NCBI RefSeq assembly: GCF_902713615.1
Contig: NC_052161.1
Location: 26,549,908 to 26,613,907 of the forward strand
From: Scyliorhinus canicula
Taxonomy: Eukaryota
Length of the DNA stretch: 64,000 nucleotides
Reading direction: 5' to 3'
The notes below the pieces were generated by a model. That model was not told where the DNA came from and did no database searches. It saw nothing but the letters and a program-made list of their open reading frames with translations. The number at the start of each line of letters is the position of its first letter. Positions within the stretch are counted from its first letter, which is position 1. Shown here in pieces: positions 4,474 to 61,245 of the stretch. The position numbers were made by a program, and so were the translations under genes.

Positions 4474-4506
4474 TTGTCGAGACCTGGTTGAGGTACTGGG
4501 GATATA

Positions 4507-12457: not shown

Positions 12458-12779
12458 CTTGTCCTTTCTTGATCGCTCCTTCCATCTGAACACTAAGCTT
12501 GTGGTCACCGCTTCAACTGTTGCATTGGACTGCTCTCGACTACCATTGTCAAAATAAGGGCAACCACTTCCTTGTGTATCTCACTACTCATGGTTAACAT
12601 TCCTCCAGTCTCAGTTAGGTGTTTATTATACCTCCCCCATCACTGTCATGCTCCTACCAATGTAACTGCTCTAAATTACTAATCATTTTTACATCTAGTC
12701 ACATTAATGTATTTGCGTGTATAAACAAACACACACACAATGAGTGGCAAATGACCAGCAAGGACAAATAGACCATAAA

Positions 12780-15011: not shown

Positions 15012-15309
15012 ACAGCACGGCAGCACAGTGGTTAGCATTGTGACTTCACAGCACCAGGGTCCCGGGTTCGATTCCCAGCTGGGTCACTATCTGTGCGGAG
15101 TCTGCACGTTCTCCCGTGTCTGTGTGGGTTTCCTCCGGGTGCACCGGTTTCCTCCCACTAGTCCCGAAAGACGTGCTGTTAGGTAATTTGGGCATTCTGA
15201 ATTCTCCCTCTGTGTACCCGAACAGGCGCCGGAATGTGGCGTCTTGGGGCTTTTCACAGTAACTTAATTGAAATGTAAGCCTACTTGTGACAATAAAGAT
15301 TATTATTAT
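15012..15309 (+). mobile_element. V-SINE variant with the alternative (ATT)n tail
   Basis: HE1-like head and V-domain followed by GTCCCGAAAGACGTGCTG...CCGAACAGGCGCCGGAATGTGGCG...GACAATAAAGATTATTATTA. Confidence 0.85.
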
Positions 15310-15559
15310 AGGGGACAGTCATTTAGCCCATCTGGTCGCTGCCAGCCTTTTTGTAGAGCAATGCGGTAAGGTGTGGCTATCTGTGAAGGACTGATAGAGA
15401 GACAATGCCTTTTCAGGAATCTCTACTCTAGTGGTGGCACTGTGGTTAGCACTGCTGCCTCACAACGCCAGGGATTCGGGTGCGATTCCCACCTCAGGAA
15501 ACTGGCTATGTGAAGTTTGCACCTATTCCCTGTGTCTTTCAACATCATCCTATTAAAGT

Positions 15560-16202
15560 CATTGACAGACTAGAATATTTACATTTTATGTTGTCAAAAA
15601 TCAGAACTACTTGCACAATACAAATAGAGAGGATGGATAGGTTATGTTCTTGATAATTTTGGAAAGCTAAAAATGTAGTCTTCAAATCTGTATTTGTGCT
15701 ACTTGTTACTGTATGAAATCATGGCCTTGGATCCAGTGAGCATCTGATTAAAGAAAACTTGCAATTTGGACATCAATCTAATTTTAATAATTATTCTAAA
15801 AAAATACACGGTCTGAAAATACAACTTAACTAGAACTAAATTATTGTAAAGAATCATTCAATCTTATAAATGCATGTACAAATTTGATCAATGCTGCATA
15901 TAAATCACAATTTAACTAAAGTTTCATTTGAGGCGGTTTTGTTCAATTGAGATGTTGAAGTAAAACAATGAAGTTTTAAAGCACAGGATAAAGAGGCACT
16001 TGTTATTAGATATGGGCAGCATTAACATGGATTGCTTCCATCTGGTTTACTAGTAAGCAAAGTTGCAAATGGTCCGAAATCTTTAAAGGGGATCTCCTTC
16101 CCATTTTCGATGGGAAGAAACATATATTTTTTTTTAAAACTGCTTCAAGCTTTTTCTTCACGCATTTGAGGTTTCAGAGCTTTTCGATGACATGTTGTCA
16201 AC
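15560..16202 (-). other. Probable terminal (3' UTR) exon 5 of the TGOLN2/C5orf15-like gene; 3' end approximate
   Basis: Strong acceptor gctctcttccttcag at 16203; AT-rich unique sequence; pairs with the donor after the stop codon at 19691. Confidence 0.55.
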
Positions 16203-16912
16203 CTGAAGGAAGAGAGCACATTATAAATTATTAGATTGAATTTGATTCCATTCCATTGCTGCCGTTGCAATTTTTGAAACTGCCCACCAGGAGGATGCTA
16301 TTTAAACATAAAAACCTTCCTGGCTACCTGTCTGAGGAAGCCTGGCCAGGGATGTAAACATCAGTGCCAAACCTGGAAAAAACACTCACTCTTTGAGTTG
16401 AGCTACATGTCAACATGACTCATGTCAGCCAGTAGATGTGGTCACATCCCACCTCTGAAAAAGGCAGACGATGTGATTAAGAGTGAAGGCTGTCATGTGT
16501 GGCTATTCTCATGAAGCAACGTGACAAGACTGGAAGTTTTCCAGTCAGTGAGGAAGTGCTTTCTCTTCCCTACAAATCCCAGTTAGAAGGGAAGCGATAA
16601 GATTCAGGAACAAAAGCTGCCAGTCTATTGATACAATCATTACTGGTAAAGTTCAGTTAAATGTTACCGATAACTACCAGTGCAGCTAAATCAGTCTTGT
16701 CACACTGAAGATAGATTAAAAGACACCTCAGTGTGAACGTAATCTCTGGTATTGGGGGTGAACAGTTAGAAGGAAAAGTCACAAAAGGGTTTCAGAAGGC
16801 ACATCAAAACTGTAGCAAAATCCCATCAGCAATTTTGCCAAGGCTACCTTCTTAGGCCAGGAAAAGGCAAACATGCCTCGAGTACAGTAGTAACAGTAGG
16901 ACTGCAGTAACA

Positions 16913-19440
16913 TTGTTGGGACTTTACTACAGGCCTCCCAAAAGCGAGCATGAAGTAGAGGTACAAATATGCAGACAGATTATAGAAAAATGTAGGAGCA
17001 ATAGGGTGGTTGTGATGGGAGATTTTAACTTCCCCAACATTGAATGGGACTCGTGTAGTGTTGGAGGCGTAGATGGAGCAGAGTTTGTAAGGAGCATCCA
17101 GGAGAGTTTTTTTAGAGCAGTATGTAAATAGTCCAACTCGCGAAGGGGCCATACTGGACCTGGTATTGGGGAATGATCCCGGCCAGGTGGTTGAAGTTTC
17201 AGTCGGTGATTACTTTGGGAATAGCGATTACAATTCCGTAAGTTTTAGAATACTCATGGACAAAGACGCGAGTGGTCCTAAAGGAAGAGTGCTAAATTGG
17301 GGAAAGGCAGAGTACAACAAAATTCGGCAGGAGCTAGGGACTGTGGACTGGGAACAGCTGTTTAAGGGTAAATCCACATTTGAAATGTGGGAGTCTTTTA
17401 AGGAAAGGTTGATTAGAGTGCAGGACAGACATGTCCCTGTGAAAATGAGGGATAGAAATGGCAAGATTAGGGAACCATGGATGACGGGTGGAATTGTGAG
17501 ACTAGCTAAGATGAAAAAGGAAGCATACATAAGATCGAGGCAACTCAAAACTGATGAAGCTTTGGAGGAATATCAGGAAAGTAGGACGAATCTCAAACGC
17601 GCAATAAAGAGGGCTAAAAGGGGTCATGAAATATCTTTGGCTAACAGGGTTAAGGAAAATCCCAAAGCCTTTTATTCGTATATAAGGAGCAAGAGGGTAA
17701 CTAGAGAACGGATTGGCCCATTAAAAGACAAAAGAGGGAATTTATGCGTGGAGTCAGAGGAAATGGGTGAGATTCTTAATGAGTACTTTGCATCGGTATT
17801 CACCAAGGAGAGGGTCATGACGGATGTTGAGGCTAGGGATGGATGTTTAAATACTCTAGGTCAAGTCGTCATAAGGAAGGGGGATGTTTTGGGTATTCTA
17901 AAAGACATTAAGGTGGACACGTCCCCAGGACCGAATGGGATCTATCCCAGGTTACTGAGGGAAGAGAGGGTCGAAATAGCTGGGGCCTTAACAGATATCT
18001 TTGCAGCATCCTTGAGCACGGGTGAGGTCCCGGAGGACTGGAGAATTGCTAATGTTGTCCCTTTGTTTAAGAAGGGTAGCAGGGATAATCCAGGGAATTA
18101 TAGACCTGTGAGCTTGACGTCAGTGGTAGGCAAACTGTTGGAGAAGATACTGAGGGATAGGATCTATTCACATCTGGAAGAAAATAGACTTATCAGTGAT
18201 AGGCAGCATAGTTTTGTGCAGGGAAGGTCATGTCTTACAAACCTAATAGAATTCTTTGAGGAAGTGACAAAGTTAATTGATGAGGGAAGGGCTGTAGATG
18301 TCATATACATGGACTTCAGTAAGACGTTTGATAAAGTTTCCCATGGTAGGTTGATGGAAAAAGTGAACTCGTATGGGGTTCAGGGTGTACTAGCTAGATG
18401 GATGAAGAACTGGCTGGGCAACAGGAGACAGAGAGTAGTGGTGGAAGGGAGTGTCTCAAAATGGAAAAGGGTGACTAATGGTGTTCCACAGGGATCCGTG
18501 CTCGGACCACTGTTGTTTGTGATATACATAAATGATCTGGAGGAAGGTATAGGTGGTCTGATTAGCAAATTTGCAGATGATACTAAGATTGGTGGAGTTG
18601 CAGATAGCGAGGAGGACTGTCAGAGAATACAGCAAAATATAGATAGATTGGAGAGTTGGGCAGAGAAACGGCAGATGGAGTTCAATCCAGGCAAATACGA
18701 GGTGATGCATTTTGGAAGATCTAATTCAAGAGCGGACTATATGGTCAATGGGTCCATTGTACCCTGAAGGTGGCAATGCAGGTTGATAGAGTGGTCAAGA
18801 AGGCATACAGTATGCTTGCCTTCATCGGACGGGGTATTGAGTACAAGAGTCGGCAGGTCACGTTACAGTTGTATAGGACTTTGGTTAGGCCCCATTTGGA
18901 ATACTGCGTGCAGTTCTGGTCGCCACATTACCAGAAGGATGTGGATGCTTTAGAGAGGGTGCAGAGGAGATTCACCGGGATGTTGCCTGGTATGGAGGGT
19001 GCTAGCTATGAAGAAAGGTTGTGTAGATTAGGATTGTTTTAGTTGGAAAGACGGAGGTTGAGGGGGGACCTGATTGAGGTGTACAAAATTATGAGAGGTA
19101 TGGACAGGGTGGACAGCAACAAGCTTTTTCCAAGAGTGGGGGTGTCAATTACAAGGGGTCATGATTTCAAGGTGAGAGGGGGAAAGTTTAAGGGAGATGT
19201 GCGTGGAAAGTTTTTTACGCAGAGGGTGGTGGGTGCCTGGAACGCTTTGCCAGCGGAGGTGGTAGAGGCGGGCACGATAGCATCATTTAAGATGCGTCTA
19301 GACAGATATATGAATGGGCGGGGAACAGAGGGAAGTAGACCTTGGAAAATAGGCGACAGGTTTAGATAAAGGATCTGGATAGGCGCAGGCTGGGAGGGCC
19401 GAAGGGCCTGTTCCTGTGCTGTAATTTTCTTTGTTCTTTT
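16913..19440 (+). mobile_element. CR1-clade LINE (HER1-like), 5'-truncated ORF2 (EN C-terminus plus RT) with frameshift and small deletion
   Basis: GLYYRPP, MGDFNFP, YRPVSLTS, DFSK.FDKV, GVPQGSVLGP, KFADDTK, RPHLEYCVQFWSP; 3' tail GGGCCGAAGGGCCTGTTCCTGTGCTG shared with HE1 SINEs. Confidence 0.95.
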
Positions 19441-19711
19441 TGTACAAGCATTTGTTTCTACTGCTTCCTCAAGATAAGGAGCATAAGTTTCAGAGTAAAA
19501 ATAAACCACAGGTGTAAACAACCGCAGACAGGCAGTAAGCTTTCTATAAATGTTCCATGAAACAAAAATGCAAAAACAACTAGGCCCAGGGGCCCAACTT
19601 GGACGCTGAATAAAGCCACCCACAATCAATGTATTCAGTTAAACTTATTAGATGCAGATAGATTTCAAAATCATTTTATGAAAACACATACCTCTTTAAG
19701 AACTTTGCCGC

Positions 19712-19837
19712 TTAATCAAGATTTCTTTTTTTCAGACTGACAATTATTTCACTTAAATTCTGATCAAGCCGTTGATATTCCGATACATTCGGACGTCTAG
19801 TTTTTCTGTAGCTATTTTTCTGACACACGGCAGTGAT
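19712..19837 (-). CDS. TGOLN2/C5orf15-family gene, coding exon 4: cytoplasmic tail ITAVCQKNSYRKTRRPNVSEYQRLDQNLSEIIVSLKKRNLD*
   Basis: Acceptor aatttcag|ATC in phase 0; SEYQRLDQ matches the TGN38/TGN46 SDYQRLDQ YxxPhi motif; stop TAA at 19712-19714; donor AG|gtatgt 20 nt downstream. Confidence 0.92.
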   Translation of the reverse strand: MTAVCQKNSYRKTRRPNVSEYQRLDQNLSEIIVSLKKRNLD

Positions 19838-21199
19838 CTGAAATTAATTAAATACATAGTAGAAATTGTTCTGTTTAAAACTCAGTCTCTGGCCATTGGT
19901 GAAATAACCTGTCTACCGCGGCATAATTCAACTCACTTTGTCGATCTGAAAACAGAGTTTTGAACCATCAGGAGAGTAATTTTAACTTGAGGTGAACACT
20001 GCACCGTCAACTTTTTACACGCGGACTTTAATAAGAGTAAAATCAGATGGGGTGTAAAATTGGTTTCCTGACAAGACTGTTAAATGACTCGCTGATCCCA
20101 TCCCAGCCTCTGTTTAAATACATGGATCTACTCCCATCCCAGCCTCTGTCATGGACCCGCACATACATATTACAAAATTTAAAACAATTTTTTAAAAGTT
20201 AGCTATAAAGCTGTTAAGTTAACTGCAGCATACCATAGGCAGATAAACAGACTTTTGGCATTTGAACAGTCGGATCAGCAGCCAATACCTTTTTAAAGGG
20301 GTTTGCAGGAAACTGATCACCAGGAACATTCAAGGTCAGTGGGTGTAGGATGAACATGAAATGGATCCCATCAACCTTTCATTGTATTGTGATAGCCCCT
20401 CATCCAAACACAAAGACCTTGGCTGTCTGAACCGTGTTAAAAAGCCACAATGCAGGATGTTTATCTGCCTAACACACCGAAAAGAGGAACTGAGACATCT
20501 CTGGATAGTAATCCAATTGGTTTTTTTTCTTCATCTGTATCAAAACTTTGTGTGAGTGATAGTGTGTGCGTCATCACTTTGTAAACATCGGGGTGCAAGT
20601 GTTGGATCATAAATATTTTTCTAATGACACAGAGGAGGCTGTCAGTGTGATCCTAGTTGGGAGGACGTCTCACCAGGCCCTGCTTTTAATCTTTGCTCAT
20701 AGCGAGCCCCAAGTGATTGGCCTCCATCTCTTACCTGGGAAGCTCGTACCCCATGAGCCCCACAGGGAGATCAATGATGGTTTCGCTGTGGGCCTCGTGG
20801 AGACTATGCCTATTGTAAAACTCAAAAGGCTTGCTGCTGGATATATTTTTATTTGGGACAACCAGGGGGCAGTGTCAACATTTCATACAAAACATTTTGA
20901 TCACGGACGATAAGAAAAGACTAGTTTGTACCCAAGGAATTTCATCCCATTTTGGATGGTTCAGTGTGGGTGGATAGGGAGGAAGAACAAGGCACCATCC
21001 GTTTCTAAACTGGTTCTAACAATTTAACAAGAAAGCCCTCATAATGGGCTTTTCCTGAGTTGATAGGTGCTGGGGGCAAAATGGTTGACGAACTAGCTTG
21101 ATGACCATTGTTAGTTCTGCCCACCACATAGCCATCAAAAATATAGTGGCAGCAGTATAAGTGGAGCCCACAACAGCCCCACCATTAAAACTTAGATTT

Positions 21200-24100
21200 C
21201 GGACTTCCGGTGGCGGCTATGAAGGAGTAAGTCGCAAATTTGGTGGCTCCCGCTCTGGTCAGACTTTTGGACCTTTCCCCCTGACTTTTTTTCGGTTTGA
21301 AACTGTAAATTCGAAGGCTGAGGCAATTGGGCACCGTTTCCACGTATCGGTGTATGGAGAAAAGAACCAGAAGTGCACGAAAAGGCAGAAATAAAAAGAC
21401 AGGCAAGGGCTGGGCTGAAGCTGCGGCAGAAGGTGGCATGGCCAAGGACCGGGCCCCTGGTGTGTTGGCCCAGCGATCAAAAGAGGAGTTGATGCAGGTC
21501 ATCCAGGACGGCTTTGCCAAGCAGAAACGGAACTGCCTGGACACGATAAAAGAGTCGATTAATCGGCTGAAGCACAGATTGGACGCCCAGGATCGGGCGA
21601 TCCAGAAGTTTGAGAAGGTACTGGCTGAGCAGGAGGAGCATCAAACTGTGTGGAGCTGGAGGTGGGGATGTTGAGTGGTCTGAGGGAGCTGATGCTGGGG
21701 CATACATAGCGGCTATTTTCGAGAAGCTGCTGGGGGAGGGGACATTCTCCCGACCCTTGGAGGTGGACAGGCCGTACTGAGCGCTTGCGAGGAAGCCGCG
21801 AACGGGGGACCCTCCGAGGGCAATGGTGGTGAGAATCCACAGGTTCCTGGACAAGGAATGTATTCTTCAGTGGGCGGAGCGATCGCGGAGCTGTAAGTGG
21901 GACAACAGTATCCTGCGGGTTTAACAGGACCCGAGTGTGGAGGTGGCCGGGAAAAGGGCAGGCTTCAACCAAATTAAGTCAATCTTTTTCAAGAAACAGG
22001 TGAAGTTTGGACTGTTGTATCCGGCTCATCTCTGGGTTACAAAAGAGGACCAGCATCATTATTTTGAGTCATCCGAAGACGCGCTGGACTTCACAAACAG
22101 AAAAGGACTGGTGGTGGACTGAGAACTTTAGAACTTTCTTGCAGCTTTTTGGCTTATATTTGGGTTTTTTTCTCTTCTGTTTTGGGTTCTGTTTAAGAAG
22201 GGGGGAAAAAAGTTTTTGTTTTCGTGTTTTCTTTCTGATGAATGTTAGCAATGCTGTTTGCTTTGATTTGCACTTTTGTGGGATGGAGAAGTGCTTGTTT
22301 GGATTTCTGTGTTTTTCTTTCAGTTGGGTGATTGTGTGGGGATCGTTAGATGAGGGAATTTGTTTGTATGAGCGGGGGGGGGGGGGGGGGTGGTGGAGGG
22401 GAGTGAGGGAACAATAGGTGGGAGATTATCTGGCGCCAGTGGCTAGGGCCACCAAGCTAGCTGGGTGAGCTAGCTCACGGAAGCGCAGTGGGGGGGGGGG
22501 GGCAGGTGCATTTGTTTAGTTTATTGTATAGATTATGTTTCAGAGTGGTGTTGCTGGAGGGGGAGGTGGGGGTCGTTGTTCTGCTGACGAGGGAGAGACT
22601 TCGGTTGAAGGACAGAGAGGAGGTCGGTGGCGGGGGGCGGGGGGGGGGGGTGGTGGAATCCGGGCTGGAGGAAGCGCGGTGCATGGGCTGGAGGTGGACC
22701 CAAGAAAGGGGATGGCTGATCGGCGGAGGGGGGGGGGGGGGGAGAGCACTGTGTCCCCCAACTAGGCTGATCACTTGGAATGTTCGAGGGCTAAATGGGC
22801 CAGTTAAGAGGGTACCTGTGTTCGCGCACCTGAGGGGACTGAAGGCGGACGTGGCAATGTTGCAGGAGACGCACCTTAGAGTAGCGGACCAGGTGAGGAA
22901 ACGCTGGGTCAGTCAGGTCTTCCACTCGGGGCTGAAGACAAATACTAGAGGGGTTACGATCTTGATTAATAAGCGGGTGATATTTGAGGTGGGCAGAATA
23001 GATTCGGATGTGGGGGGGGTCGATATATTATTGTGAGTGGTAAGCTGGAGGGGATGAAGGTAGTGTTGGTTAATGTATATGCTCCAAATTGGGATGACGT
23101 GGAATCCATAAAGAGGATGTTGGGGAAGTACCGGACCTGGACTCGCACAAGCTGATCATGGGAGGGGATTTTAATACAGTTATTGATCCCGGCCTGGATC
23201 GGTCATACACGAAAACAGGCAGGGTTCCAGCAATGGCAAAGGAACTGAAAGGGTTCAAGGTGCAATTGGTGGGGGGGGGGTCCATGGAGATTTAGGCAGC
23301 TGAGGGTGAAGGAGCTTTTCTTCTTCTCCCAGGGGTGGTGGACACGGGTACTCGGCGATTAAAATCTCAGACCACGCTCCACACTGGGTTGACCTGCAGG
23401 TTAGTAAAGATAGTAATCAGTGCCCGCATGGAGGTTAGATGTAGGGATGTTGGCGGACGAAGCGGTGTGCGAGACGCTGAGGAAATGCATACAAAATTAC
23501 CTGCAAGTAAATGAAATGGGAGAGGTCTCAGCAGCAGTGGTCTGGGAAGCGCTGAAGGCAGTGGTGAGAGGAGAGCTGATCTCGATCCGGGCTCATAGGG
23601 ACAGGACGGACAGGGCAGAGACAGACCGACTGGTAAAAGAGATTCTACAAGTTGACAGGAGATATGCGGAGAATCCAGAGATAGAGCTTTTAAGGGAACG
23701 GCGGAGGCTACAGGTGGAGTTCGGCTTGTTAACCACAGGGAGGGCAGTGGAACAGGTCAGAAAGCGAGGGGGGTGATCTACGAGCACGGGGAGAAAGCCA
23801 GCAGGATGCTTACACAGCAGTTCAAAAAGAGGGAGGTAGCTAGAGAAATAGAGAAAGTTATTGATGAGGATGGGAACTAGGTTGGGGATTCGGCAGGGGT
23901 AAGTAAGGCGTTTAGGGATTTCTACAGCAGGCTTTACAGGTCGGAGCCCCCTGCAGGGCTGGAGGGGATGAGGCACTTCCTGGAGGGGTTGACTTTCCCG
24001 AAGGTGGACGGGGAGCTGGTAGAAGGACTGGGGGCCCCGATCGGGTTGGAAGAGATAGTGGAGGGCTTGAAGGCCATGCAGTCGGGTAAAGCCCCGGGAC

Positions 24101-26560
24101 CGGACGGATACCCAGCGGAGTTCTATAAAAAGTTCTCTGGGACTGGTGCTGATGAAGGTGTTTAATGAGGCAAGGGAAAGAGGGGTTCTGCCCCAGATGA
24201 TGTCACAGGCCGCGATTTAGCTTATCCTGAAACGGGACAAGAACCCGGAGCTATGTAGGTCCTACAGGCCGATACCCCTGTTGAATGTTGACGCCAGACT
24301 ATTGGCCAAAATTTTGTCCTCCAGGATCGAGGATTATGTGCCGGACGTTATTGTGAAGGATCAGACGGGGCTCGTTAACGGCAGGCAGCTGATGGCCAAT
24401 GTAAGAAGGCTGTTAAATGTGATCATGATGCCCCCGGAAAGTAGGGAGGTGGAGGTAGTGGTCGCAATGGATGCGGAAAAAGCTTTTGACCGGGTTGAAT
24501 GGGATTATTTATGGGAGGTTCTGGGGTGGTTTGGATTTTGGAGGGGCTTTATTGACTGGGTCAGGTTGCTGTACCAGGCTCCTGTGCAAGTGTACGGATG
24601 AACAGGACGACTTTGGACTATTTTAGACTGCATCGGGGGACGAGACAGGGATGCCCCCCTCCCCACTGCTGTTTGTGCTGGCTATAGAGCCAGTGGCAAT
24701 TGCTCTGAGAGCCTCAAGGGGCTGGATGGGGCTGGTCCGGGGGGTGGGGGGGGGTGGGGCGGATTGGAGCACAGAATCTCACTTTATACGGATGACCTGC
24801 TCCTGTATGTTTCGGATCCAATTGAGGGGTTGAAGAAATCATGGGAATTTTAGAGGAATTTGTCCGGTTCTCGGGGTATAAGCTTAATATGGGGAAGAGC
24901 AAGATGTTTGTGGTCCAGGCGAGGGGTCAGGAGAGGCGACTGGGGGATCTGCTGTTTAGATTGGTAGGGGACAGTTTCAGATACCTAGGTATTCAAGTAA
25001 CGAGGGACTGGGACAGGCTACATAAATTGAACTTGGCCCAGTTGGTAGATCAGATGAAAGATGATTTCCGGAGATGGGATGCACTCCCGTTGTCTCTAGC
25101 TTCAAACAGTGAAAATGACGGTCCTCCCAAAATTCCTGTTTGTATTTCAATGTCTCCCCATCTTCATTCCGCGGTCCTTTTTTAAGCGGGTCAACAAAGT
25201 AATTGCGGGCTTTGTGTTGGGGGCAATTTTACTGGGCGGCTAATATAGCCATGATCAGGAAGTGGGTGGTGGGGGAAGGGTTGGCATTGGTGCACATGGA
25301 GGCGGCTTATTGCAAGGTCACAAGTTTGGGGACATTGGTAACTGCGCCTCTGCCGTTCCCGCCGGTGCGGTACTCCACCAGCCCTGTGGTGGTGGCGGCC
25401 CTGAGAGTCTGGGGGCAATGGAGGAGATATTGTCTGGTCCCCAATCTGCGATAATCACCTGTCTGCCTCGGGAGTATGGATGGGGGCGTTCCGAATATGG
25501 CGGAGAGCGGGGATTGAAAGGATGGAGGACTTGTTTATAGAGGGGAGCTTTCAGAGTATGAGGGCGCTGGAGGAGAAGTTTGCGTTGGTGAGGGGAAACA
25601 AATTTAGACATCTGCAGGTGCGGGACTTTCTGCGTGGACAGGTGTCAACCTTCCGCCTCCTACCGCTAAGGGTAATTTTCAGAGGATGGGTAGGAGAGGG
25701 GAGCGTCTCTGACATTTACAAGGAAGTTATGGGATCCGAGGAGACGCAGACCGAGGAGCTGAAGTGCAAGTGGGAGGAGGGATTGGGGGGAAGAGATAGA
25801 GGAGGGCCTTTGGGCGGACGCATTGAGTAGAGTCAACACGACCGCAACTTGTGCCGGACTCAGCCTGATACAATTCAAGATCGTTCACTGGGCTCACATG
25901 ACAGTGGCCCGGATGAGCAGATTCTTTGGGGTGGAAGACAGGTGTGCAAAATGTGCGGGAGGACCAGCGAACCATGTCCACATGTTCTGGCCATGTCCAA
26001 AGCTTAGGGGATTTTGGCAGGGTTTTGCTGACATCATGTCCAAGGTATTAAAAACAAGGGTGACATTGAGTCCAGAGGTGGCGATTTTCAGGGTGTCGCA
26101 AGATCCGGGAATCCAGGAGGAGAAAGAGGCAGATGTTCTGGCCTTTGCTTCCCTGGTAGCCTGGAGACGGATACTATTAGCTTCGAGGGACTCAAAGCCC
26201 CCGAAGTTGGAGACCTGGCTATCTGGCAGGGCTAGCTTTCTCTGTCTGGAGAAAATTAAGTTCGCCTTGAGAGGGTCACTGTTAGGGTTCACCCAGAGGT
26301 GGCCACCATTCATCAACTTCTTCACGGAAAATTAATCGTCAGCAGGGGTGTGTGTGGGGGGGGGGGGGGCGGTGGAGGGGAGGGGGGGGCGGTGGTTAGG
26401 TTAGCGTAGATTAGGAGGTTAATTAATGGTGGGACCTGTTATGGAGGGAGGTGGTATTTGCACTATGTTTATAGTCTTATGTACATTGTTTATATTGTTG
26501 CTGTTACAATGCCAACAAATGCCTCAATTAAATGTTTATTTAAAAAAAACAAAAAAAAAA
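21200..26560 (+). mobile_element. Near full-length L1-clade LINE (5'UTR, ORF1, ORF2 APE-RT-CCHC, poly-A), inactivated by stops and frameshifts
   Basis: 5' GGACTTCCGGTGGCGGC; ORF1 remnants; ITWNVRGLN, LQETH, GGDFN (APE); KAPGPDG, DAEKAFDRVEW (RT); CCHC; A-tail; degenerate TSD AAAAcTTaGATT / AAAAtTTtGATT at a TT/AAAA site. Confidence 0.93.
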
Positions 26561-26728
26561 TTTTGATTACCAAAGTTTTACCTATTGCCAGCAGATTTGT
26601 TTTGCAAGCAGCATTTTATCAGGCTAATTGTAGGCACTGTATAGAACAGCTACACTAACAAGTCACTGAATGTGAAATTTAAAGATTGGCTCTGCATTCT
26701 ATTACTTACATGCAGTGCAATTGAATGA

Positions 26729-27040
26729 AGAACATACAGTGTAGAAGGAGGCCATTCGGCCCATCGAGTCTGCACTGACCCACTTAAGCCCTCACTTCAA
26801 CCCTATCCCCGTAACCCAATACCCCTCCTAACTTGGGTCACTAAGGGCAATTTATCATGGCCAATCCACCTAACCTGCACGTCTTTGGACTGTGGGAGGA
26901 AACTGGAGCACCCGGAGGAAACCCACGCACACACGGGGAGAACGTGCAGACTCCACAGACAGTGACCCAGCAGGGAATCGAACCTGGGACCCTGGCGCTG
27001 TGAAGCCACAGTGCTAGCCACTTCTGCTACCGTGCTACCC
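26729..27040 (-). mobile_element. HE1-type V-SINE
   Basis: Head, V-domain and HER1-type tail on the minus strand. Confidence 0.9.
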
Positions 27041-27286
27041 ATTGTGACTTTCATATTGACCATGACTAGACATTAACCTACATGCCTGGTTTTGAAGAGT
27101 TCACACTTACACCATTTGATTCCAATTGTTTTTGAATTAACATGCGTGATTATCCCTCTTCTCAAAACTGTATTTAGTGCATGAAAATCAGCAGGAAAAC
27201 CTTTGTGTGCTGATTATATATCCTTGACATCCAAAACTTAAATTACTGTAGTTAGTACAGAAAAATCAGAAAGCTGACAAGCATAC

Positions 27287-28902
27287 CTTATTTTTGTTGT
27301 GGTAGAGGATATACACTACCGCGACAAGCGATGATCCAATTAGCAGATAAATTATGAAGTGATGCTCAAATATTTCGGATAGCACAGTTTTCAGGATGGC
27401 AGGGCTGGCCGGCACTGCGTGTTCGCTGTTCCCTCTGTCCTCTGGCACTGCGTGTCCACTGTTCCCTTTGTCCTCTGGCACTGCGTGTCCACTGTTCCCT
27501 TTGTCCTCTGGCACTGCATGTCCATCGTTTACTTTGTCCTTTGTCACCGCAGTTCCATTGTTTACATTGTCCTTTGTCACCGCAGTTCCATCGTTTACTT
27601 TCTCCTTTGTCACCACAGTTCCATCATTTACTTTCTCCTTTGTCACCGCAGTTCCATCGTTTACTTTATCCTTTGTCACTGCAGTTCCATCGTTTACTTT
27701 CTCCTTTGTCACCGCAGTTCCATCGTTTACTTTATCCTTTGTCACTGCAGTTCCATCGTTTACTTTCTCCTTTGTCACCGCAGTTCCATCGTTTACATTG
27801 TCCTTTGTCACCACAGTTCCATTATTTACTTTGCCCTTTGTCACCGCAGTTCCATCGTTTACTTTGTCCTTTGTCACCGCAGTTCCATCGTTTACTTTCT
27901 CCTTTGTCACCGCAGTTCCATCGTTTACTTTCTCCTTTGTCACCGCAGTTCCGTTGTTTCCTTTGCCCTTTGTCACCGCAGTTCCATCGTTTACTTTCTC
28001 CTTTGTCACCGCAGTTCCATTATTTACTTTGCCCTTTGTCACCGCAGTTCCATTATTTACTTTGCCCTTTGTCACCTCAGTTCCGTTGTTTCCTTTCTCC
28101 TTTGTCACCGCAGTTCCGTTGTTTCCTTTGTCCTTTGTCACCGCAGTTCCGTTGTTTCCTTTGCCCTTTGTCACCTCAGTTCCATTGTTTACTTTGCCCT
28201 TTGTCACCGCAGTTCCATCGTTTACTTTGCCCTTTGTCACCGCAGTTCCATTGTTTACTTTGCCCTTTGTCACCGCAGTTCCATCGTTTACTTTGCCCTT
28301 TGTCACCGCAGTTCCGTTGTTTACTTTGCCCTTTGTCACCGCAGTTCCGTTGTTTACTTTGCCCTTTGTCACCGCAGTTCCATCGTTTACTTTCTCCTTT
28401 GTCACCGCAGTTCCGTTGTTTCCTTTGTCCTTTGTCACCTCAGTTCCATTGTTTACTTTGCCCGTTGTCACCGCAGTTCCGTTGTTTCCTTTGTCCTTTG
28501 TCACCTCAGTTCCATCGTTTACTTTGCCCTTTGTCACCGCAGTTCCGTTGTTTACTTTGCCCTTTGTCACCGCAGTTCCGTTGTTTACTTTGCCCTTTGT
28601 CACCGCAGTTCCGTTGTTTACTTTGTCTTTTGTCACCTCAGTTCCATCGTTTACTTTGCCCTTTGTCACCGCAGTTCCGTTGTTTCCTTTGCCCTTTGTC
28701 ACCGCAGTTCCGTTGTTTCCTTTCTCCTTTGTCACCGCAGTTCCGTTGTTTACTTTGTCTTTTGTCACCTCAGTTCCATCGTTTACTTTGCCCTTTGTCA
28801 CCGCAGTTCCGTTGTTTCCTTTGCCCTTTGTCACCGCAGTTTCGTATTTTTCTTTGTTTCCTGGTTCCTGTTTTCCTGGTCCCTCACCGTTCAATAAACA
28901 TC
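27287..28902 (-). CDS. TGOLN2/C5orf15-family gene, coding exon 3: repeat-rich luminal domain plus transmembrane helix
   Basis: Acceptor cttgcaatatag|GA (phase 1); ends HHFIIYLLIGSSLVAVVYILYHNKNK|gtatgc (phase 0), matching the family signature HFF.YL.....VAV.YI..HNKRK. Confidence 0.92.
27410..28845 (-). repeat. Coding minisatellite: about 43.5 copies of a 33-bp unit encoding (N/D)GT(A/E/V)VTK(G/E/D)K(V/G)N
   Basis: Direct inspection; the last 3-4 units diverge to SGHAVPEDKGN. Confidence 0.97.
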
Positions 28903-29042
28903 CTATATTGCAAGTGGTGGCAGAAAGAGGATTGAAAAGGTTACTTTTTTCTTTAAACATACTGCACTAGATGACACAAAACATTCCCAGCAAAATATAG
29001 CAATTATTGTATTGTAGATAAACATTGTAATTAAAGTATACC

Positions 29043-31880
29043 AGACTTCTGGTGACGGCTATGAGATGAACGGTTTCACAGAATGTGGCTCCCGTTTGGG
29101 GATTTGTTTTTTGGCCCTTTTTGCCCAGTTAATGGGTGTCTTTTGGGAAGAAGCGTAGTGTAGCTCGAGAGTTTTGGTTCCCCCTTCGGTGTGTGATGTC
29201 TGGAGGTTATAACACGAGGAATAAGTTGACAAAGGATCCCCAATGCCCTGCAGCCTCAGAAGGGGAGAAAATGGCATTAGTCTCTGTGGCGTCGTTGTCC
29301 TCTCAGTGGTCGACTAGGAGGTTGGTGGTTTCCTAACGTGGGAATTCAGAAAACAGGAGGGGGTGGTATTTGGATGAATTGGGGAATGTTCACTGTCCTG
29401 TTGGTAATGTGTGTGTGTGTTGGTGGTGGGGGCGCAGGAGTTGGCGGGGTGTTTTTTCCCATCCGATAATGTTTGACATTAAAGTTACGTATGGATAAGG
29501 AGACCGGTTCGCTGAGACATAATGCGTATTACTTTGATTCTTTGAGTTTTCCCAGGTGGGGTCACCGTGCAGGCGGGTATTCTGATTAATGGGAGCGGAG
29601 TGGGGGAGAGTACTGCAGCTGGTTACCTGGGAGGGTTGGGGGGAGGGGGGGTTCTTTTGTCCATTAAGCTAACGTGCATAGGTTTCTTGGGTTTTGTTTG
29701 CGGAGGGTGGGACTGTGCGGGCGATGGGTGGATTGCCAACAATGAAAGTTCCTTTGTTTACATACTGGTTTGAGGAGAGTGACGGTAGTCATTTTGGGTG
29801 GGCCTGGAGGGGGTGCAGGTTGGGGCCCTGTCAGACTTACTTGCGGAAGTAGAAGGGGCCCCAAGAGGGGCTGGGTGGGTCCCGGGGTTGGTGGGGTGGA
29901 TGGAACTTTATAAACAGTTTGCGGCTCTGTTGGTGTTTTATATATTAGATATGTTCAATGGTTCTTTGTCCCGGGTGTGGGTGTTACCCGCTACACTGGC
30001 TTCGATCTCTTTGATCTTCCAAAAAGGGCTAAAGACCTATTGTATAAATCCATCTCTCTGCCTACTTTCGATGCAAAGCTGTTGGCTAAGATGCTGGCAA
30101 CCCACTTCGGTGAATTCTGAGGAGCCGACAGGTTTTGTTAAGGGTTGAAAGTTGCCTGCCATTATTAGGAGACTTTTGAATGTGGTGTTGTCGCTCTCTT
30201 TCGGGTTTGAGCCAGAAGTGATTATCGCCATGGACACGGAAAAAGCGTTCAACTGGGAGGAGTGCGGGTACCTTTTTGAAATTATGGGCTGGTTTGGTTT
30301 TGGGCCTAAATTCATATCTTGGGTTAAGCTTTTGTATAGCGCCCCCACTGCAAGTGTCCGTAACAGTGCCCTGTATTTGGGGCACTTTTGGTTGAATAGA
30401 GGTACGAGGCAGGATTGTCCACTTTCCTTGTTATTGATCACTTTGGCAATTCAGCCGTTGGCCATTGCACTCTGGTCATCGACCAGTCGGAAGGGAATAG
30501 ATGGGAGATAGAGAACTTGGGGTTTCTTTGTACGCGAATGATTTGTTGTTATAGGTCACAGATCATCCCTCTCCAGTGGGGAAGGTAATTGAGGTACTTG
30601 GGAAGTTTGGTTCCTTCTCAGGGTATAGATTAAACATGGGAACGAGTGAAATCTTTCCGGTGAATCCTCCAGGAAGGGGAGGGGAGCTGATCTGGGGGGA
30701 TTACGTTTTGTCTGGCCAGGACTTCTTTCGGATATCTTGGGGTACGGGTAGCGCTGACTGGGCCTCGTTCCTTGGTTGAACCTGGCCCATCTGGTGAATG
30801 GGATGAAGGTGGATTTGAAGAGATGAAGAGATGGGATGCCCTCCCATTGTCGCTGGCAGGTAGAGTTCAGATGGGAAAGATAAAAATTCTCCCAAGGTTT
30901 TTGTCCATGTTTCAGTGTCTCCCAGTCTTTCTTCGGTAGGGTCAACAAGTTGATTTTGACCTTTGTTTAGGTGGGTTTGAAGGGTTTTTTGCAAAGGGAT
31001 AAACAATCGAGGGGATTGGCACTGCCTGATTTGATGGATTATAACTGGGCAGAAAACATTGAGAATGGTCAGGGGTGGTTTAAGAACTCAGATTCGGTAT
31101 GGGGGTGGATGGAGGAGGCTTCTTGTATATGAGGGCAGATTGAGGTGGCTTCTTGTGTCGGTTCGAGTTTGGGGGCACTTAGTACTGATCCTCTTCCCTT
31201 CTCTCCAGTCACGCTCTCTTCGAGCCCAGTGGTAATAGCCTCTCTGAGAATTCAGACAACATTTTAAGTTAGGATCTAGGTCGTTACGGGTTCCGATATG
31301 TGGGAATCATAGTTTTGAACTGGCTGGGACAGATTCAACATTTGAGATATGGGAGAGGGAAAGGGGTAGTGTGGATTGGAAATTTGTTTGAGGAGGGTAG
31401 GTTTGCTGAGCTGGAGAAGTTCCAACTTCCAAGAGGGATGTTCTCAAGGCGCGAGACTGTGCATAAGAACTTTGTTTCCTCGGTTGCTGGCGCCTTCATT
31501 TGTGGATAAGGTTCTGTCTCATGATGGGATAGGGGAATGGAGAATTTCAGATATCTATGGGCAGATACTGGCGATGGAGAAAGTAAAGGGAAAATGGGAG
31601 GAATAGTTGGGTTTGGTTTTGAAAGACGGGGTGTGGAGTGAGGCTTTGCATAGGGCCAACTATACCTCCTCATGTGCAAGGTTTAAGTTTGATACAGCAT
31701 AGGCTGCACTTGACCAAGTGGGTTCTTCCCGGGGGTAGAGGAGACTTGAATGGTGTTCCACGGGCGTGGCAAACCATTTGCACATGTTTTGTTTTTTCCC
31801 CAAGCTTGTTAAGTTCTGGGCCTCCTTTTCTGAAACAATGGTGAACATACAATAATGCCATTAGTGGCATTTTTGCTTTT
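29043..31880 (+). mobile_element. Old, heavily deleted L1-clade LINE
   Basis: 5' GACTTCTGGTGACGGCTATG resembles the 21200 copy; DTEKAFNWEE, RGTRQDCPLS and FSGYRLNM fragments. Confidence 0.85.
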
Positions 31881-32089
31881 CCGACTTGGCCACAAGTTTA
31901 CATTAGTGTGCAAGGCAGTAATATTGGTTTTCCCAAAGAAAGTCAACTTTGAATAACAAGTCATAAAATGAGACAGTGCTCACCAGCCGCATACAAGATT
32001 CAATGCATTCGTAATCGATCAGAGGGTTTCTAAGTATTAGAGGTAAAAAAAGTAAATTAAACTCCCAGTGCCACTTTAAGGAACAGTAA

Positions 32090-32787
32090 GGGGCAGCACG
32101 GTAGCACTGTGGATAGCATAATTGCTTCACAGCTCCAGGGTCCCAGGTTCGATTCCGGCTTGGGTCACTGGCTGTGCGGAGTCTGCACATCCTCCCCGTG
32201 TGTGCGTGGGTTTCCTCCAGGTGCTCCGGTTTCCTCCCACAGTCCAAAGATGTGCAGGTTAGGTGCATTGGGGGCAGCAGGGTAGCATGGTGGTTAGCAT
32301 AAATGCTTCACAGCTCCAGGGTCCCAGGTTCAATTCCCGGCTGGGTCACTGTCTGTGTGGAGTCTGCACGTCCTCCCCCTGTGTGCGTGGGTTTCCTCCG
32401 GGTGCTCCGGTTTCCTCCCACAGTCCAAAGATGTGCGGGTTAGGTGGATTGGCCATGCTAAATTGCCCGTAGTGTCCTAATAAAAGTAAGGTTAAGGGGG
32501 GGGGGTTGTTGGGTTACGGGTATAGGGTGGATACGTGGGTTTGAGTATGGTGATCATGGCTCGGCACAACATTGAGGGCCGAAGGGCCTGTTCTGTGCTG
32601 TACTGTTCTATGTTCTAATGGCCATGATAAATTGCCCTTAGTGTCCAAAATTGCCCTTAGTGTTAGGTGGGGTTACTGGGTTATGGGGATAGGGTGGAGG
32701 TGTTGACCTTGGGTAGGGTGCTCTTTCCAAGAGCCAGTGCTGACTCGATGGGCCGGATGGCCTCCTTTTGCACTGTAAATTCTATGA
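32090..32787 (+). mobile_element. HE1 V-SINE with a second HE1 V-SINE (32270-32617) nested inside it
   Basis: Outer copy breaks at GTTAGGTGCATTGG and resumes at ATGGCCATGATAAATTGCCC after a complete inner copy. Confidence 0.9.
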
Positions 32788-33989
32788 AAAAGAGGCAGCT
32801 ATCCGTGTATAGCTGCTACAATGCGCCTGCTCCCAATATGTTGGGACCGTTATCAGCAACAGAGTTGATAAGTGTAGGTCAAGGTGTTAACTGTAAATAA
32901 AATTCCCCTTTTTGCACTGAGCAGGCAGACAGAAATATAAATACTTAGAAAAGATTGGCATTATAAAGGTTAAAAGCAATTGATTGAAGCAAATTTTTTT
33001 TAAAAAGCAAATAATGTACAATTGTTTATCGAGCACAGACTAGCTCTGGCCCACACAAATCAGGATTTTAACCAAATGTTATTAATGTTAGGGCCAATTT
33101 TATTTGAGTACATCAATCAATCAATACCAGACAAATGAAGGTACTATATTGAAAGATAGATTTCCGTCATTGGGCACAATCCAGACTATAAAAATGCACC
33201 CATGCTATGATTGATTCAAATTTCCTGTGAATTTCATTAGAATAGTCACAAACGTGGGGATGCATGCAATCTAGTATAAGCAATAAGGCGCCAAAGGAGG
33301 ATAAAGGCTGGGAACCTCCGAGCACTGGCTAAAATAATCTGATTGCTGCTGCTGCTATTGAGAATTCCCAACCCGGACGCGACACTATTCCACATTCCTG
33401 TTGGGGTCTTCAAAGCCCAATTTTCTTCACAATGCAGCATCCCTCAGGGAACTCTGTTGTGGCAGAGTAGAGTCAGGAAGACAGGATATGCCCCTAGTTG
33501 CCCTTTGGCCAAGTTTTTCTGTCTTAACATTACCTGGGTAACTACCCAGGCAAGTACATCAAGACTATCCAAAGCCTCAGACTGTAACTTAGCATCAGAA
33601 ACATTCACAGAGGGTCCAGGGCAGCAGAGCAATTTTCCACCAGAAGTGAAAACTTTCCTTGTAGATCCGGGTGTCAGGATTTCCACTGGGCCCAGGCGTG
33701 AATCTTCTGTTGTATATAAAGTCCAGAGACCAGAAAATTTTATTCCAGGAACATAAAGTAAAAGTTTCAACTCCATTAACTAAATCATTCATACAAATCA
33801 GAAGGAGCCCAAAACTTGTAATCAGGAAACTTTGTAAATTTTTTATGTGGTTTCACTCAAAAAAAATGTACTGAACCTCATTTCCTGTTCAGGTCTTAAG
33901 TGAGGAAAATCTTTAAGATGCTCAATAATTGCAATGGATTATCAGAGAAATTATGATTTTCTATAACATTTGTAGTCAAGTAGTCACAT

Positions 33990-35355
33990 GGAAAAATGTG
34001 GGTTGATTGGAAGAGTCAGCATGGATTTTTAAAGGGGAAATCATTTTTAACTAATTTGCTGGAGTGTTTCAAGAGGATAACAGAAAAGGTTGATGAGGGT
34101 ACTGCTGTTGATGTGGTGTACATGGACTTTCAAAAGGCATTCGATACAGTGCCACACAACAGACTTCAGAAAAGTTACAGCTTATGGAATAAAAGGAACA
34201 GTGGCAACGTGGATCCAAAATTAGCTGAATAACAGGAAGCAGAGTGTAATGGACAATGGATATTTTTGGGGGTTGGAAGAAGGTGTTACCTCGTGCTCTG
34301 TATTGGGACCCTTGCTTTTCCTGGTATATATTAGTTATCTAGATTTTGGTGCGCAAGGGACAATTTCAAAGTTTCTGGATGACACAAAACTTGGAAGCAT
34401 TGTAAAGTGTGAGGAGGACAGTGCAGAACTTCAAAAGGACATATACAAGCTGGTGAAGTGGGCAGATAGGTGGCAGATGAAGTTGAGTGTGAAGATCGTG
34501 AGGTGATGCATTCTGGCAGGGTAGAACATGGAGAGACAATGCGCTGGATTCTCCGCTTCCCCAGCCACATGTTTCTCGGCAGCGCGATTCTATCCACCCA
34601 CTGCTTGTCAATTAGATTCCAAATTGAAACCACCCCACACCGCCGGAAACCATGGGCGGGGTTGCGCTGCTGGCGGGAAAAGTGAACAGGCGGAGTATTC
34701 CGGCCAATATAAAATAAGGGGTAATATTCTTAAAGTGTGCAGGAGCAGAGGGACTAAGGTCTATGTGGAGAGAGCAGTTAATAAAGCCTATATATTCTCG
34801 TCTTTATTAATTGGGGCATAGAGTATAGCAGCAAGGAGGTTTGCTGAACTTACACAAGACATTAGTTGGACTTCAGCCGGAATAGTGTGTACAGTCCCAG
34901 GCACCACACTAAGGATGTAAACGCATTGAAGAGTGCAGAAAAGATTTCTAAAAATGAGAAACTTCAGCAATGAGGATAGATTGGAAGGGTTGGGACTGTT
35001 CTCCTTGGAAGAAAGGCGACTCTGTTAGAGATGTTGAAAATCATGAGGGGATTGGGATAGAGAGGGAGAAACGTAAAAGGTTAAGAACGAGAGGGCACAG
35101 ATTTAAAGTGATTTGCAAAACAAGCAAATGTGATGCGAGAAAAAAATCTTTTTCACAGGAGTGATTTGTGACTGGAATGCACTGTGTGTAAGTGTGGTGG
35201 AGGAAAGTCCAATCGAGGCATTTAAGAGGGCGTTAGATGATTATTTGAATTGAAAGAATGTGCAGGGGTACAGGGAAAGAGGCAGGGCAGTGTCATTGGA
35301 GAGCTGGTGCAGACATGATGGGCCGAATGGCCTCCTTCTGTACCAATTCTGTGAT
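33990..35355 (+). mobile_element. Degenerate CR1-clade LINE 3' fragment
   Basis: SQHGFLKGKS.LTNLLE, DVVYMDFQKAFD, KFLDDTKLG; tail GGGCCGAATGGCCTCCTTCTG. Confidence 0.88.
34541..34705. mobile_element. Small Harbinger-type MITE inside the CR1 fragment
   Basis: GCGCTGGATTCTCCG...CGGAGTATTCCGGCC termini with 3-bp TSD AAT; removal restores the LINE sequence. Confidence 0.75.
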
Positions 35356-35503
35356 TCTGAAGAGAACCCCCTTTGAACCAGTGCATTCCGGAAACTCCTC
35401 ATTTTAAAAGGGCGGGGCTCGTTTTTATGGGCAGGGGGGGCTGAGACCTCTTTGAGAGATGAAGCGTTGCATTCGACTCCCAAATATACTGGAGGCTCCG
35501 TAC

Positions 35504-35597
35504 TTGGATTGGAGATTGCCCGTGTCCCTGGGGACAAATACGCCGCAAAATTTGAGGCAGACACAAACATCAAGAACAAAAAACAACCCCTTCCTCT
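35504..35597 (-). CDS. TGOLN2/C5orf15-family gene, coding exon 2: signal peptide RGRGCFLFLMFVSASNFAAYLSPGTRAISNP
   Basis: Acceptor cttccttgtttcag|AGA (phase 0); donor CCAA|gtacgg (phase 1) fits the phase-1 start of exon 3; basic n-region plus hydrophobic core. Confidence 0.72.
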
Positions 35598-36048
35598 CTG
35601 AAACAAGGAAGTTATTAAAACGAAAGTGAAGGCGAAGTTTTAGCGATATTAGTTGGTTACAATGGAGTTGGTTCCGGGGGATAGCACGTGCCCAAGACCA
35701 AGGTCCGACCACGGTCAGTTTCCCCAGTGAGTAGATACTTAATACACCCCCACCCCACACACACGCACAAACAAACAAAAAGTCAAGTTTAGATTATTGC
35801 CATGTCTTCCGTCTCTCACTGAAAACAAAAAGGACCTCCAGTGAAAACGTATCTCTGGACGTTTAAGCACAGTCGATGCAACACAACACCGGGGTCAGGA
35901 ATAGAACAAAGTTCCCGCTGGGACTGGGTAACCTGCACTGTTTGTATCAGCTCCTGAAGGATCTGTGCACCTGCTTCCCGTTTCCCACTGAAAAGACACA
36001 CGATCCCCCCACCCACCCCAGTCGAGTTTCACATGTAATAAAACTTAC

Positions 36049-36051
36049 CAT
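36049..36051 (-). CDS. TGOLN2/C5orf15-family gene, exon 1 coding part (ATG only)
   Basis: tcatcaATG|gtaagt perfect donor, in phase with exon 2. Confidence 0.68.
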
Positions 36052-36330
36052 TGATGATGAGACACAGCACTACAATTCCGGGCAAACTGTCCTTCCACGC
36101 CATGTTGCTGTATTCCGGGAGATCAGTTCAATCGAAAGTACAATGCGGAAATCCACGCACACTTTCTGCAATAAAGTCTGTCACCGCCTCCGTATTGGTT
36201 GAAAGAGCAGCTCTCTTTAAAAATAAAACATCTATGTACACACACAAACGTAGAGTTGGGATCAATACTGTTGGATAGAATTAGGTCGATTCGCCCAAGG
36301 CTAAATTCTCCTTACGAGAAATGACCTATT
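36052..36330 (-). promoter_or_regulatory. Putative 5' UTR and core promoter of the TGN-like gene
   Basis: Minus-strand CCAAT (about 36195), GC-box-like GGAGGCGG (about 36185), ETS-like CCGGAA sites, local CpG retention. Confidence 0.45.
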
Positions 36331-60638: not shown

Positions 60639-60707
60639 ATGAATATACCGTGTGCTCGTTGTGGATTTGGCGTATATCCCGCTGAGAAAGTAGTTTGCAT
60701 TGACCAG
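60639..60707 (+). CDS. NRAP: Nebulin-related anchoring protein, coding exon 1 (MNIPCARCGFGVYPAEKVVCIDQ)
   Basis: LIM N-terminus matching NRAP (C.RCG.GVYPAEK..CIDQ); donor CAG|gttagt. Confidence 0.93.
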
Positions 60708-60827: not shown

Positions 60828-60922
60828 ACATGGCACAAATCGTGTTTCCACTGTGAGGTCTGCAAAATGATCTTAACTGTCAACAACTTTATCAGTCACC
60901 AGAAGAAACCTTTTTGCCATGC
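60828..60922 (+). CDS. NRAP: NRAP coding exon 2 (TWHKSCFHCEVCKMILTVNNFISHQKKPFCHA)
   Basis: Acceptor ccatag, donor GC|gtaagt; completes the LIM zinc ligands. Confidence 0.95.
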
Positions 60923-61245
60923 GTAAGTCGTTTAAACATTAATAACAACTTTGTTGGACTATTCCCATTAAAGGGCTTTTACATCTCGATTGATATTAAT
61001 ACACCTTAAATCGAGACAAATCTGGCAATTAAACACGTTATGTTATTGGATATCAATTCTGTTTTGCTGTGTGCACTAGAAGTACCATTGGCTTTCCAAT
61101 TTTAGATCCACAGATTTATACCATTGAAATTATTTGTAGTGAAGAGAGATTGAAGAATTTTGCGTATAACCCGGGTGGGATTGAGAGACTATCTGATCGA
61201 TTATCTTGGTGCAAATTGGTGGCAATGTTTTATTTTAATTCGCAG

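Follow-up and report, generated by a model that had tools for sequence, protein, structure and literature searches.

The DNA analysed here is a stretch of 64,000 nucleotides from Scyliorhinus canicula (contig NC_052161.1 of RefSeq assembly GCF_902713615.1, positions 26,549,908 to 26,613,907 of the forward strand). We call it the window, and all coordinates are given in its own positions. On its minus strand lies a gene, termed T3, whose product is predicted to belong to the same family as TGOLN2 (TGN38/TGN46) and KCT2 (C5orf15), and of which NRAP, on the plus strand, is the head-to-head neighbour. An earlier note on this stretch had proposed that the gene is a third vertebrate member of the family.

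The coding model of T3 consists of three exons and is intact in the window sequence, with splice sites that are all of the GT-AG type and with compatible phases (Table 1). Exon 1 comprises 18 codons plus one nucleotide, has the start context aacATGG and ends at the donor G/gtaagt (the slash marks the exon border). It is supported by homology, as the N-termini of the orthologues P0001 and P0004 read MAWK... or MAWR... and continue with a hydrophobic stretch. The borders of exon 2 are the acceptor ...caatatag/GA and the donor ...AAT AAG/gtatgc, and exon 3 runs from the acceptor ttaatttcag/ATC to a TAA stop codon at 19714-19712. Together the exons amount to a coding sequence of 1797 nt, that is, a product of 598 amino acids (aa) plus the stop codon. 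Downstream of the stop there is a single AATAAA, at 17676, within a stretch derived from a long interspersed nuclear element (LINE). The earlier note had described a phase-consistent, intact model of about 612 aa spanning 16202-36051. Intactness and phases hold, and the gene does lie there, but the sum of the exons gives the shorter length, the end at 36051 would remove nearly all of exon 1, and the start at 16202 has no counterpart in the coding part, which ends at 19712. The observation of an intact gene is thus confirmed with corrected coordinates and length.

Table 1. Features of the T3 gene and its surroundings, in positions of the window.
Feature	Position	Strand	Details
T3 coding exon 1	36049..36103	minus	ATG at 36103-36101; signal-peptide start MAWKDSLPGIVVLCLIIN; ends in phase 1
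T3 coding exon 2	27287..28902	minus	signal-peptide end, luminal repeat domain, transmembrane (TM) helix, YHNKNK
Tandem array, 33-bp units	27436..28841 (luminal domain: 27411-28841)	minus	42.6 copies, 90% match, no indels
Single TM helix FIIYLLIGSSLVAVVYILY	27302..27358	minus	by-eye reading; aligns with the TM segment of all family members
T3 coding exon 3	19712..19837	minus	cytosolic tail ITAVCQKNSYRKTRRPNVSEYQRLDQNLSEIIVSLKKRNLD and stop codon
SEYQRL	19766..19783	minus	sequence motif; Y-x-x-Phi sorting motif of the TGN38 SDYQRL type
NRAP first coding exon	60639..60707	plus	MNIPCARCGFGVYPAEK; MNIPCARCGFGVYPAEKVVCIDQ; 78-87% identical to the start of the LIM+Nebulin gene beside the Callorhinchus and Pristis orthologues
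NRAP second LIM exon	60828..60923	plus	Pfam LIM, E 1.4e-6; 88-94% identical at loci L002 and L004
Reverse-transcriptase-type/LINE-like ORFs, Gypsy-like pol	17166-19369, 22488-26335, 29798-31500	plus
Reverse-transcriptase-type/LINE-like ORFs, Gypsy-like pol	39019-40995, 45364-47489	minus

The predicted product consists, in this order, of a hydrophobic N-terminus, the repeats, a single TM helix, a juxtamembrane HNKNK and a tail of 41 residues (ITAVCQKNSYRKTRRPNVSEYQRLDQNLSEIIVSLKKRNLD). It thereby has the layout of a type I membrane protein, namely an N-terminal signal peptide, one TM helix near the C-terminus and a tail with a Y-x-x-Phi motif (the tail of the family measures about 45 residues). 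The tail of the window gene can be written as ITAVCQKNS...RRPN...YQRLDQNLSEIIVSLKKRNLD, and the Y and the L of its Y-x-x-Phi motif are invariant in 14 of 14 aligned tails. The tandem array encodes about 43 repeats of 11 aa, of which some 40 are TAVTK[GDE]K[VG]N[ND]G units, followed by three of the type HAVPEDKGNSG. N-x-S/T sequons number 24 across the whole protein; a unit that ends in NNG and is followed by T creates an N-G-T sequon, while NDG units yield none. The array that makes up the luminal domain is young and has no indels in its 33-bp units. Orthologues measure 123-398 aa, compared to the 598 aa found here, and their repeat types differ; the orthologue repeats are unrelated, such as the proline-rich GTKGTEPPPEGT in Stegostoma. 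From these sequences we infer a luminal domain that is fast-evolving and repeat-rich. Taken as a whole, the window gene is predicted to encode a functional-looking type I membrane glycoprotein of the TGN38/KCT2 family.

Membership in this family, which the earlier note had claimed, is borne out by a match to the Pfam family KCT2 (PF17818) that covers both the TM and the tail exons. The open reading frame (ORF) of exon 2 reaches 26.4 bits, where the cut-off is 26.2; its TM piece taken by itself has 25.2 bits (profile positions 117-145), and 16.7 bits are obtained for the tail exon (profile positions 149-183). The profile positions of exons 2 and 3 adjoin, which agrees with the splice model. An intron straight after HNKxK is present not only in the window gene but also in T3 of Pristis and Callorhinchus, in KCT2 of Heptranchias, Amblyraja and Scleropages, and in TGOLN2 of Syngnathus; wherever exon 1 could be located in the compared genes, it is short, encodes the signal peptide and stands ahead of the large exon. 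The exon plan is common to T3, KCT2 and TGOLN2, and the window gene is therefore a DNA-level duplicate. An origin of T3 as a retrocopy was considered and is ruled out by the introns that the subfamilies have in common. To our knowledge, KCT2 is the sole recognised vertebrate relative of TGN38/46, and it is poorly understood. Outside the vertebrates, the tgn-38 gene of C. elegans has been described as the co-orthologue of human TGOLN2 and C5orf15 (PMC11804744).

Relatives of T3 were collected with phmmer, using the spliced 68-residue TM-plus-tail sequence of the window gene as the query against 1.84 billion protein cluster representatives. The search returned 371 family matches at E<=0.001, of which the 150 best are considered below. 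Eight of them stand out with 64-97 bits and 52-70% identity, the next match having 50 bits. Seven of these eight are named, and all seven are chondrichthyan (Chiloscyllium, Stegostoma, Heptranchias, Pristis, Mobula, Narcine and Callorhinchus). The remaining one groups 17 Logan contigs, 1.2-1.9 kb long, each of which encodes the full T3 protein of 335 aa (or 317 aa). Such contigs can only be spliced transcripts, because the introns of genomic T3 span several kb. The orthologue models (XP_043568714.1, XP_051883815.1, XP_059509026.1, XP_067858286.1, XP_072095672.1, XP_007903846.2 and XP_069756076.1) have the same tail signature as the window gene and, wherever it is visible, the same linkage to NRAP, and they differ from it in the type of their luminal repeats and in length. 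Their public names are TGN38-like, trans-Golgi network integral membrane protein 1-like, KCT2-like, MAGE-like protein 2, basic salivary proline-rich protein 4-like and uncharacterized. The mislabelling that had been predicted is indeed seen: the names are inconsistent and none of them marks a separate family member. T3 is already in the public annotation, under misleading names, as a so far unnamed family member, and its being a separate member explains why one gene has received five unrelated public names.

The remaining 142 of the 150 best matches have a tail of the TGOLN2 or the KCT2 type, apart from a few invertebrate-type sequences, so that no T3-type protein was found outside chondrichthyans among the 150 best of the 371 matches. 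Two word-indexed protein searches with the TM region gave no match, since the relatives have too few exact 5-residue words in common and length limits excluded some sequences. Both known members of the family are found in cartilaginous fishes as well. Heptranchias (XP_067851913.1) and Amblyraja have KCT2 proper. A TGOLN2-type protein occurs in Pristiophorus, Cetorhinus, Mustelus, Heterodontus and Scyliorhinus, and outside the sharks it is best matched by TGOLN2 sequences from reptiles, mammals and teleosts. In Heptranchias, T3 and KCT2 lie on different chromosomes.

A comparison of the tails shows in which features T3 resembles the known members and in which it does not. Like T3, TGOLN2 is of type I, has a repeat-rich luminal domain, the motifs Y-H-N-K-x-K, RRP and S-[DE]-Y-Q-R-L, three coding exons with the phase-0 intron after HNKxK, and a caspase as neighbour at its locus. 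However, the TGOLN2 tail follows the signature IIA[FYV]-x-[LVI]-EG...RRPK...YQ[RK]L[DE]Q and ends one to two residues later, which is not the case in T3: it is devoid of the IIAF-x-LEG of TGOLN2, and after YQRLDQ it has a 17-residue extension that TGOLN2 has lost. KCT2 is like T3 with regard to PF17818, topology and exon plan, and after Y-x-R-L-D-Q-N its tail continues with x-x-[ED]-x-x-x-S-L-K, as does that of T3. T3, in contrast, lacks the W-[RK]-x-x-[LF]-C block and the ..DYIF end of KCT2, and KCT2 lacks RRP. In the tail alignment, T3 has retained RRP(N), as have TGOLN2 and the outgroups, together with the extension DQNLSE-x-I-x-SLKK after YQRL, which can be compared to DQNV.EAMPSLK in KCT2 and to DQNLSDVMPSLQK in the outgroup sequence P0014. 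The outgroup tails (the louse Polyplax; P0014, P0118 and P0125) combine IIA..EG, RRRP(N), Y-x-K-L and NL-[SE]-[ED], a set that T3 has kept in part. The tail of T3 is most simply taken to have preserved ancestral features, namely RRP, the Y-x-x-Phi motif and the DQNL..SLK extension. C. elegans tgn-38, compared by description only, and the single-copy homologues of invertebrates predate the vertebrate duplications.

The relation between the three subfamilies was further analysed in a maximum-likelihood tree of 49 TM-plus-tail sequences (73 columns), rooted on the insect-type (invertebrate) sequences. The window gene and its eight relatives form a T3 clade with a support of 100/98. The KCT2 clade (100/99) excludes T3 and contains shark sequences as sister to those of bony vertebrates, and the TGOLN2 clade (98/86), which has shark sequences inside, excludes T3 as well. 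As the earlier note had expected, T3 belongs to neither known subfamily. Within the T3 clade the branching follows the species tree, with Callorhinchus first and then sharks versus rays, from which it follows that T3 was present in the chondrichthyan ancestor; the window gene groups with the carpet sharks Chiloscyllium and Stegostoma. Two other assignments were discarded. T3 is not the shark orthologue of TGOLN2, because sharks have a TGOLN2-type gene of their own and the TGOLN2 clade excludes T3. Nor is it the shark orthologue of KCT2, because sharks have their own KCT2 and a grouping of T3 with it is rejected by the approximately unbiased (AU) test (p = 0.003).

The tail characters provide an argument that is independent of the likelihood model. 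TGOLN2 of both sharks and bony vertebrates ends right after YQRLDQK, without the extension, which means that TGOLN2 lost it before the split between cartilaginous and bony vertebrates. T3, which retains the extension, could therefore have branched off later from shark TGOLN2 only if the extension had been lost twice. Clades and tail characters alike suggest that the split between T3, TGOLN2 and KCT2 is older than the cartilaginous/bony divergence. P0014 itself, a protein of 116 aa encoded on a 2-kb contig, branches outside all three vertebrate clades, and its tail joins features of all three subfamilies (IIAVIIEG, RRRR, YQKL, DQNLSDVMPSLQK and ..EYKF). It could stem from a cyclostome or from an invertebrate deuterostome, and it could be useful for rooting.

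We then turn to the genes that surround the family members. In the window, T3 and NRAP are arranged head-to-head, as had been noticed before, with start codons that are 24.5 kb apart. In Callorhinchus, NRAP (LIM+Nebulin, 1701 aa, minus strand), T3 (plus strand) and a Peptidase_C14 gene (313 aa, plus strand, L002:17903-21161) follow each other within 21 kb. In Pristis, a gene of 1668 aa is found head-to-head with T3, and its NRAP LIM exons are 87% and 94% identical to those of the window. Linkage to NRAP is thus conserved in a ray and in a holocephalan, and in the latter T3 occupies exactly the interval between NRAP and a caspase. A translocated orthologue or a recent duplicate, the two outcomes which the earlier note had set against its own proposal, is not what is observed.

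TGOLN2 and KCT2 have neighbours of their own. In Syngnathus, TGOLN2 is the immediate downstream neighbour of a TCF gene (CTNNB1_binding plus HMG box), and in Scleropages KCT2 adjoins a Porin_3 (VDAC-type) gene of 283 aa; these match the human neighbourhoods TCF7L1-TGOLN2 and C5orf15-VDAC1-TCF7 named in the earlier note. T3, in contrast, adjoins NRAP rather than TCF7L1 and falls into a separate clade from TGOLN2, and no VDAC-type neighbour like that of KCT2 is present in the window. Unexpectedly, a Peptidase_C14 gene comes next after TGOLN2, in tail-to-tail orientation, in Anolis (252 aa, L008:21562-25310) as well as in Heterodontus and Cetorhinus (265 aa; neighbours read from gene tables). This pairing links the TGOLN2-type genes of sharks with the canonical TGOLN2 locus. 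An executioner-type caspase is therefore the neighbour of two of the three family members, T3 and TGOLN2. The caspase beside TGOLN2, whose readable Anolis exon gives only a weak caspase-3-like match, may be CASP17, a gene reported to be absent from therian mammals (PMC5965869). The pairing of family member and caspase looks older than the duplication, and it could help to sort out the paralogy of caspases 3, 6, 7 and 17. For KCT2 in Heptranchias and Amblyraja and for T3 in Heptranchias, no neighbour was called in the 10-kb flanks, the distance to which shark chromosome neighbourhoods were read. Motif searches of the window detected no caspase, VDAC or TCF exon. Since positions 1-17000 contain no CASP7 exon, CASP7, if present, lies beyond the start of the window.

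Where the three members are found bears on how they arose. In human, the three family-member blocks lie near TCF7L1, TCF7 and TCF7L2. The genes TCF7, LEF1, TCF7L1 and TCF7L2 are held to be ohnologs from the two rounds of genome duplication (2R) in early vertebrates, with TCF7L1 and TCF7L2 as sisters (PMC9303524). We consider it probable that T3 is a third, ancient member of the TGN38/KCT2 family, and that it is the 2R copy of the TCF7L2/NRAP/CASP7 block, lost in bony vertebrates. Its separation from TGOLN2 and KCT2 would be older than the divergence of cartilaginous and bony fishes; T3 would most likely be the copy that the two genome duplications left in this block, and bony vertebrates would have lost it later. 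That a caspase accompanies a family member at two loci is better accounted for by a block duplication than by the copying of a single gene. The duplication is dated as older than the jawed-vertebrate crown, and the ohnolog reading, with 2R as the best-fitting mechanism, is well supported, though not proven. The third-member interpretation of the earlier note is supported in so far as all of its tested parts came out as predicted.

A more detailed version of this history, to which we give roughly even chances, starts from an ancestral block composed of a TCF gene, a TGN38-like gene and an executioner caspase. It would have given rise to TCF7L1-TGOLN2-caspase (the caspase probably being CASP17), to TCF7L2...NRAP-T3-CASP7 and to TCF7-VDAC1-KCT2, while the LEF1 block would have kept CASP6 and lost its TGN38-like gene. 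T3 would have been kept only by cartilaginous fishes, with the ancestral two-part tail of YQRL and DQNLSE..SLKK. If this is true, T3 would be a living stand-in for the sorting code that the TGN38-like protein had prior to the duplications.

Several points weigh against T3 as an ancient 2R copy. The linkage of NRAP and CASP7 to TCF7L2 is known from human gene maps only. The 73 columns of the tree give no resolved order among T3, KCT2 and TGOLN2, and a clade of T3 and shark TGOLN2, although 14.8 log-likelihood units worse, is not rejected by the AU test (p = 0.13). The absence of T3 from bony vertebrates and cyclostomes is drawn from annotated and predicted proteins, not from genome DNA, and at most two of the three members were found in any one species. 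With regard to the gene itself, the signal peptide and the TM helix were read by eye and are not the output of a predictor, the transcript evidence for T3 comes from outside this species only, and the repeat array can be read through in several frames, on both strands, which makes the ORF weak coding evidence. Because open frames are common across a tandem repeat, the case for the gene rests on the non-repeat parts, that is, the signal peptide, the TM helix and the tail, which are 67% identical to the nearest orthologue.

Among the other explanations, the one that survives best is that T3 is indeed a paralogue predating the jawed-vertebrate split, but that it arose by a small segmental duplication and not by 2R, its position at CASP7/NRAP being a coincidence. 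We regard this as unlikely. The three clades are of equal rank and their order is not resolved, which leaves the split undated, and the TCF7L2 linkage is that of human, not of sharks. Yet the members sit beside TCF7L1, beside VDAC1-TCF7 and beside NRAP-CASP7, the first two of these associations being seen here, and in human all three are near TCF7L1, TCF7 and TCF7L2. These TCF genes are themselves 2R ohnologs (PMC9303524). Moreover, executioner-type caspases flank two of the three members, and C. elegans has a single co-orthologue, tgn-38 (PMC11804744).

According to another explanation, T3 is a chondrichthyan-specific duplicate of TGOLN2 that arose in the stem lineage, was inserted between NRAP and CASP7 and diverged fast. 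The restriction of T3 to chondrichthyans, the RRP and S-[ED]-Y-Q-R-L that it has in common with TGOLN2 and the retention of T3 plus shark TGOLN2 in the AU test would all be compatible with it. What makes it improbable is that TGOLN2 of sharks and of bony vertebrates group together without T3 (98/86), that DQNLSE..SLK is found in T3, KCT2 and P0014 but not in TGOLN2, so that T3 must have left the TGOLN2 line before the loss, and that a caspase neighbour at both loci favours a block duplication. Finally, we give hardly any credence to the idea that the locus in this species is a decaying or unexpressed copy whose long frame merely results from the tandem repeat. In its favour, the array has several open frames, on both strands, retrotransposon fragments are present in both introns and in the 3' flank, and the window protein is absent from the protein collection that was searched. 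Against it, none of the three exons is disrupted, their splice sites are canonical and their phases match, the array is free of indels, and signal peptide, TM helix and tail are conserved to the extent given above.

A function can also be predicted for T3. TGN38/46 is a standard marker of the trans-Golgi network and a model cargo for cycling between this compartment and the plasma membrane. In T3, the signal peptide would place the repeat-rich, N-glycosylated domain in the lumen and the single helix would anchor the protein in the membrane, while the SEYQRL of the tail would be recognised by AP-2, through its mu2 subunit, and by related adaptors. T3 would then cycle between trans-Golgi network, plasma membrane and endosomes, as TGN38/46 does, and by analogy this is its most likely behaviour. 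The SDYQRL motif of TGN38 mediates internalisation, return to the trans-Golgi network and binding to AP-2 mu2 (PMC2119736, PMC2133967, PMC3655264). The conserved DQNLSE-x-I-x-SLKK may contain a further sorting signal or a site for a binding partner, which TGOLN2 would have given up. As the probable 2R copy of its block, T3 would be a clean case of an ohnolog that was lost in the bony-vertebrate line; the finding is useful comparative genomics rather than a new kind of biology.

With regard to the remainder of the window, positions 6000-10000 are GC-rich (0.56-0.59) and devoid of a recognisable coding exon. Retroelement ORFs (Table 1) fill both introns of T3, its 3' flank and the intergenic region between T3 and NRAP, and because of them the locus is several times longer than its counterpart in Callorhinchus and Pristis.

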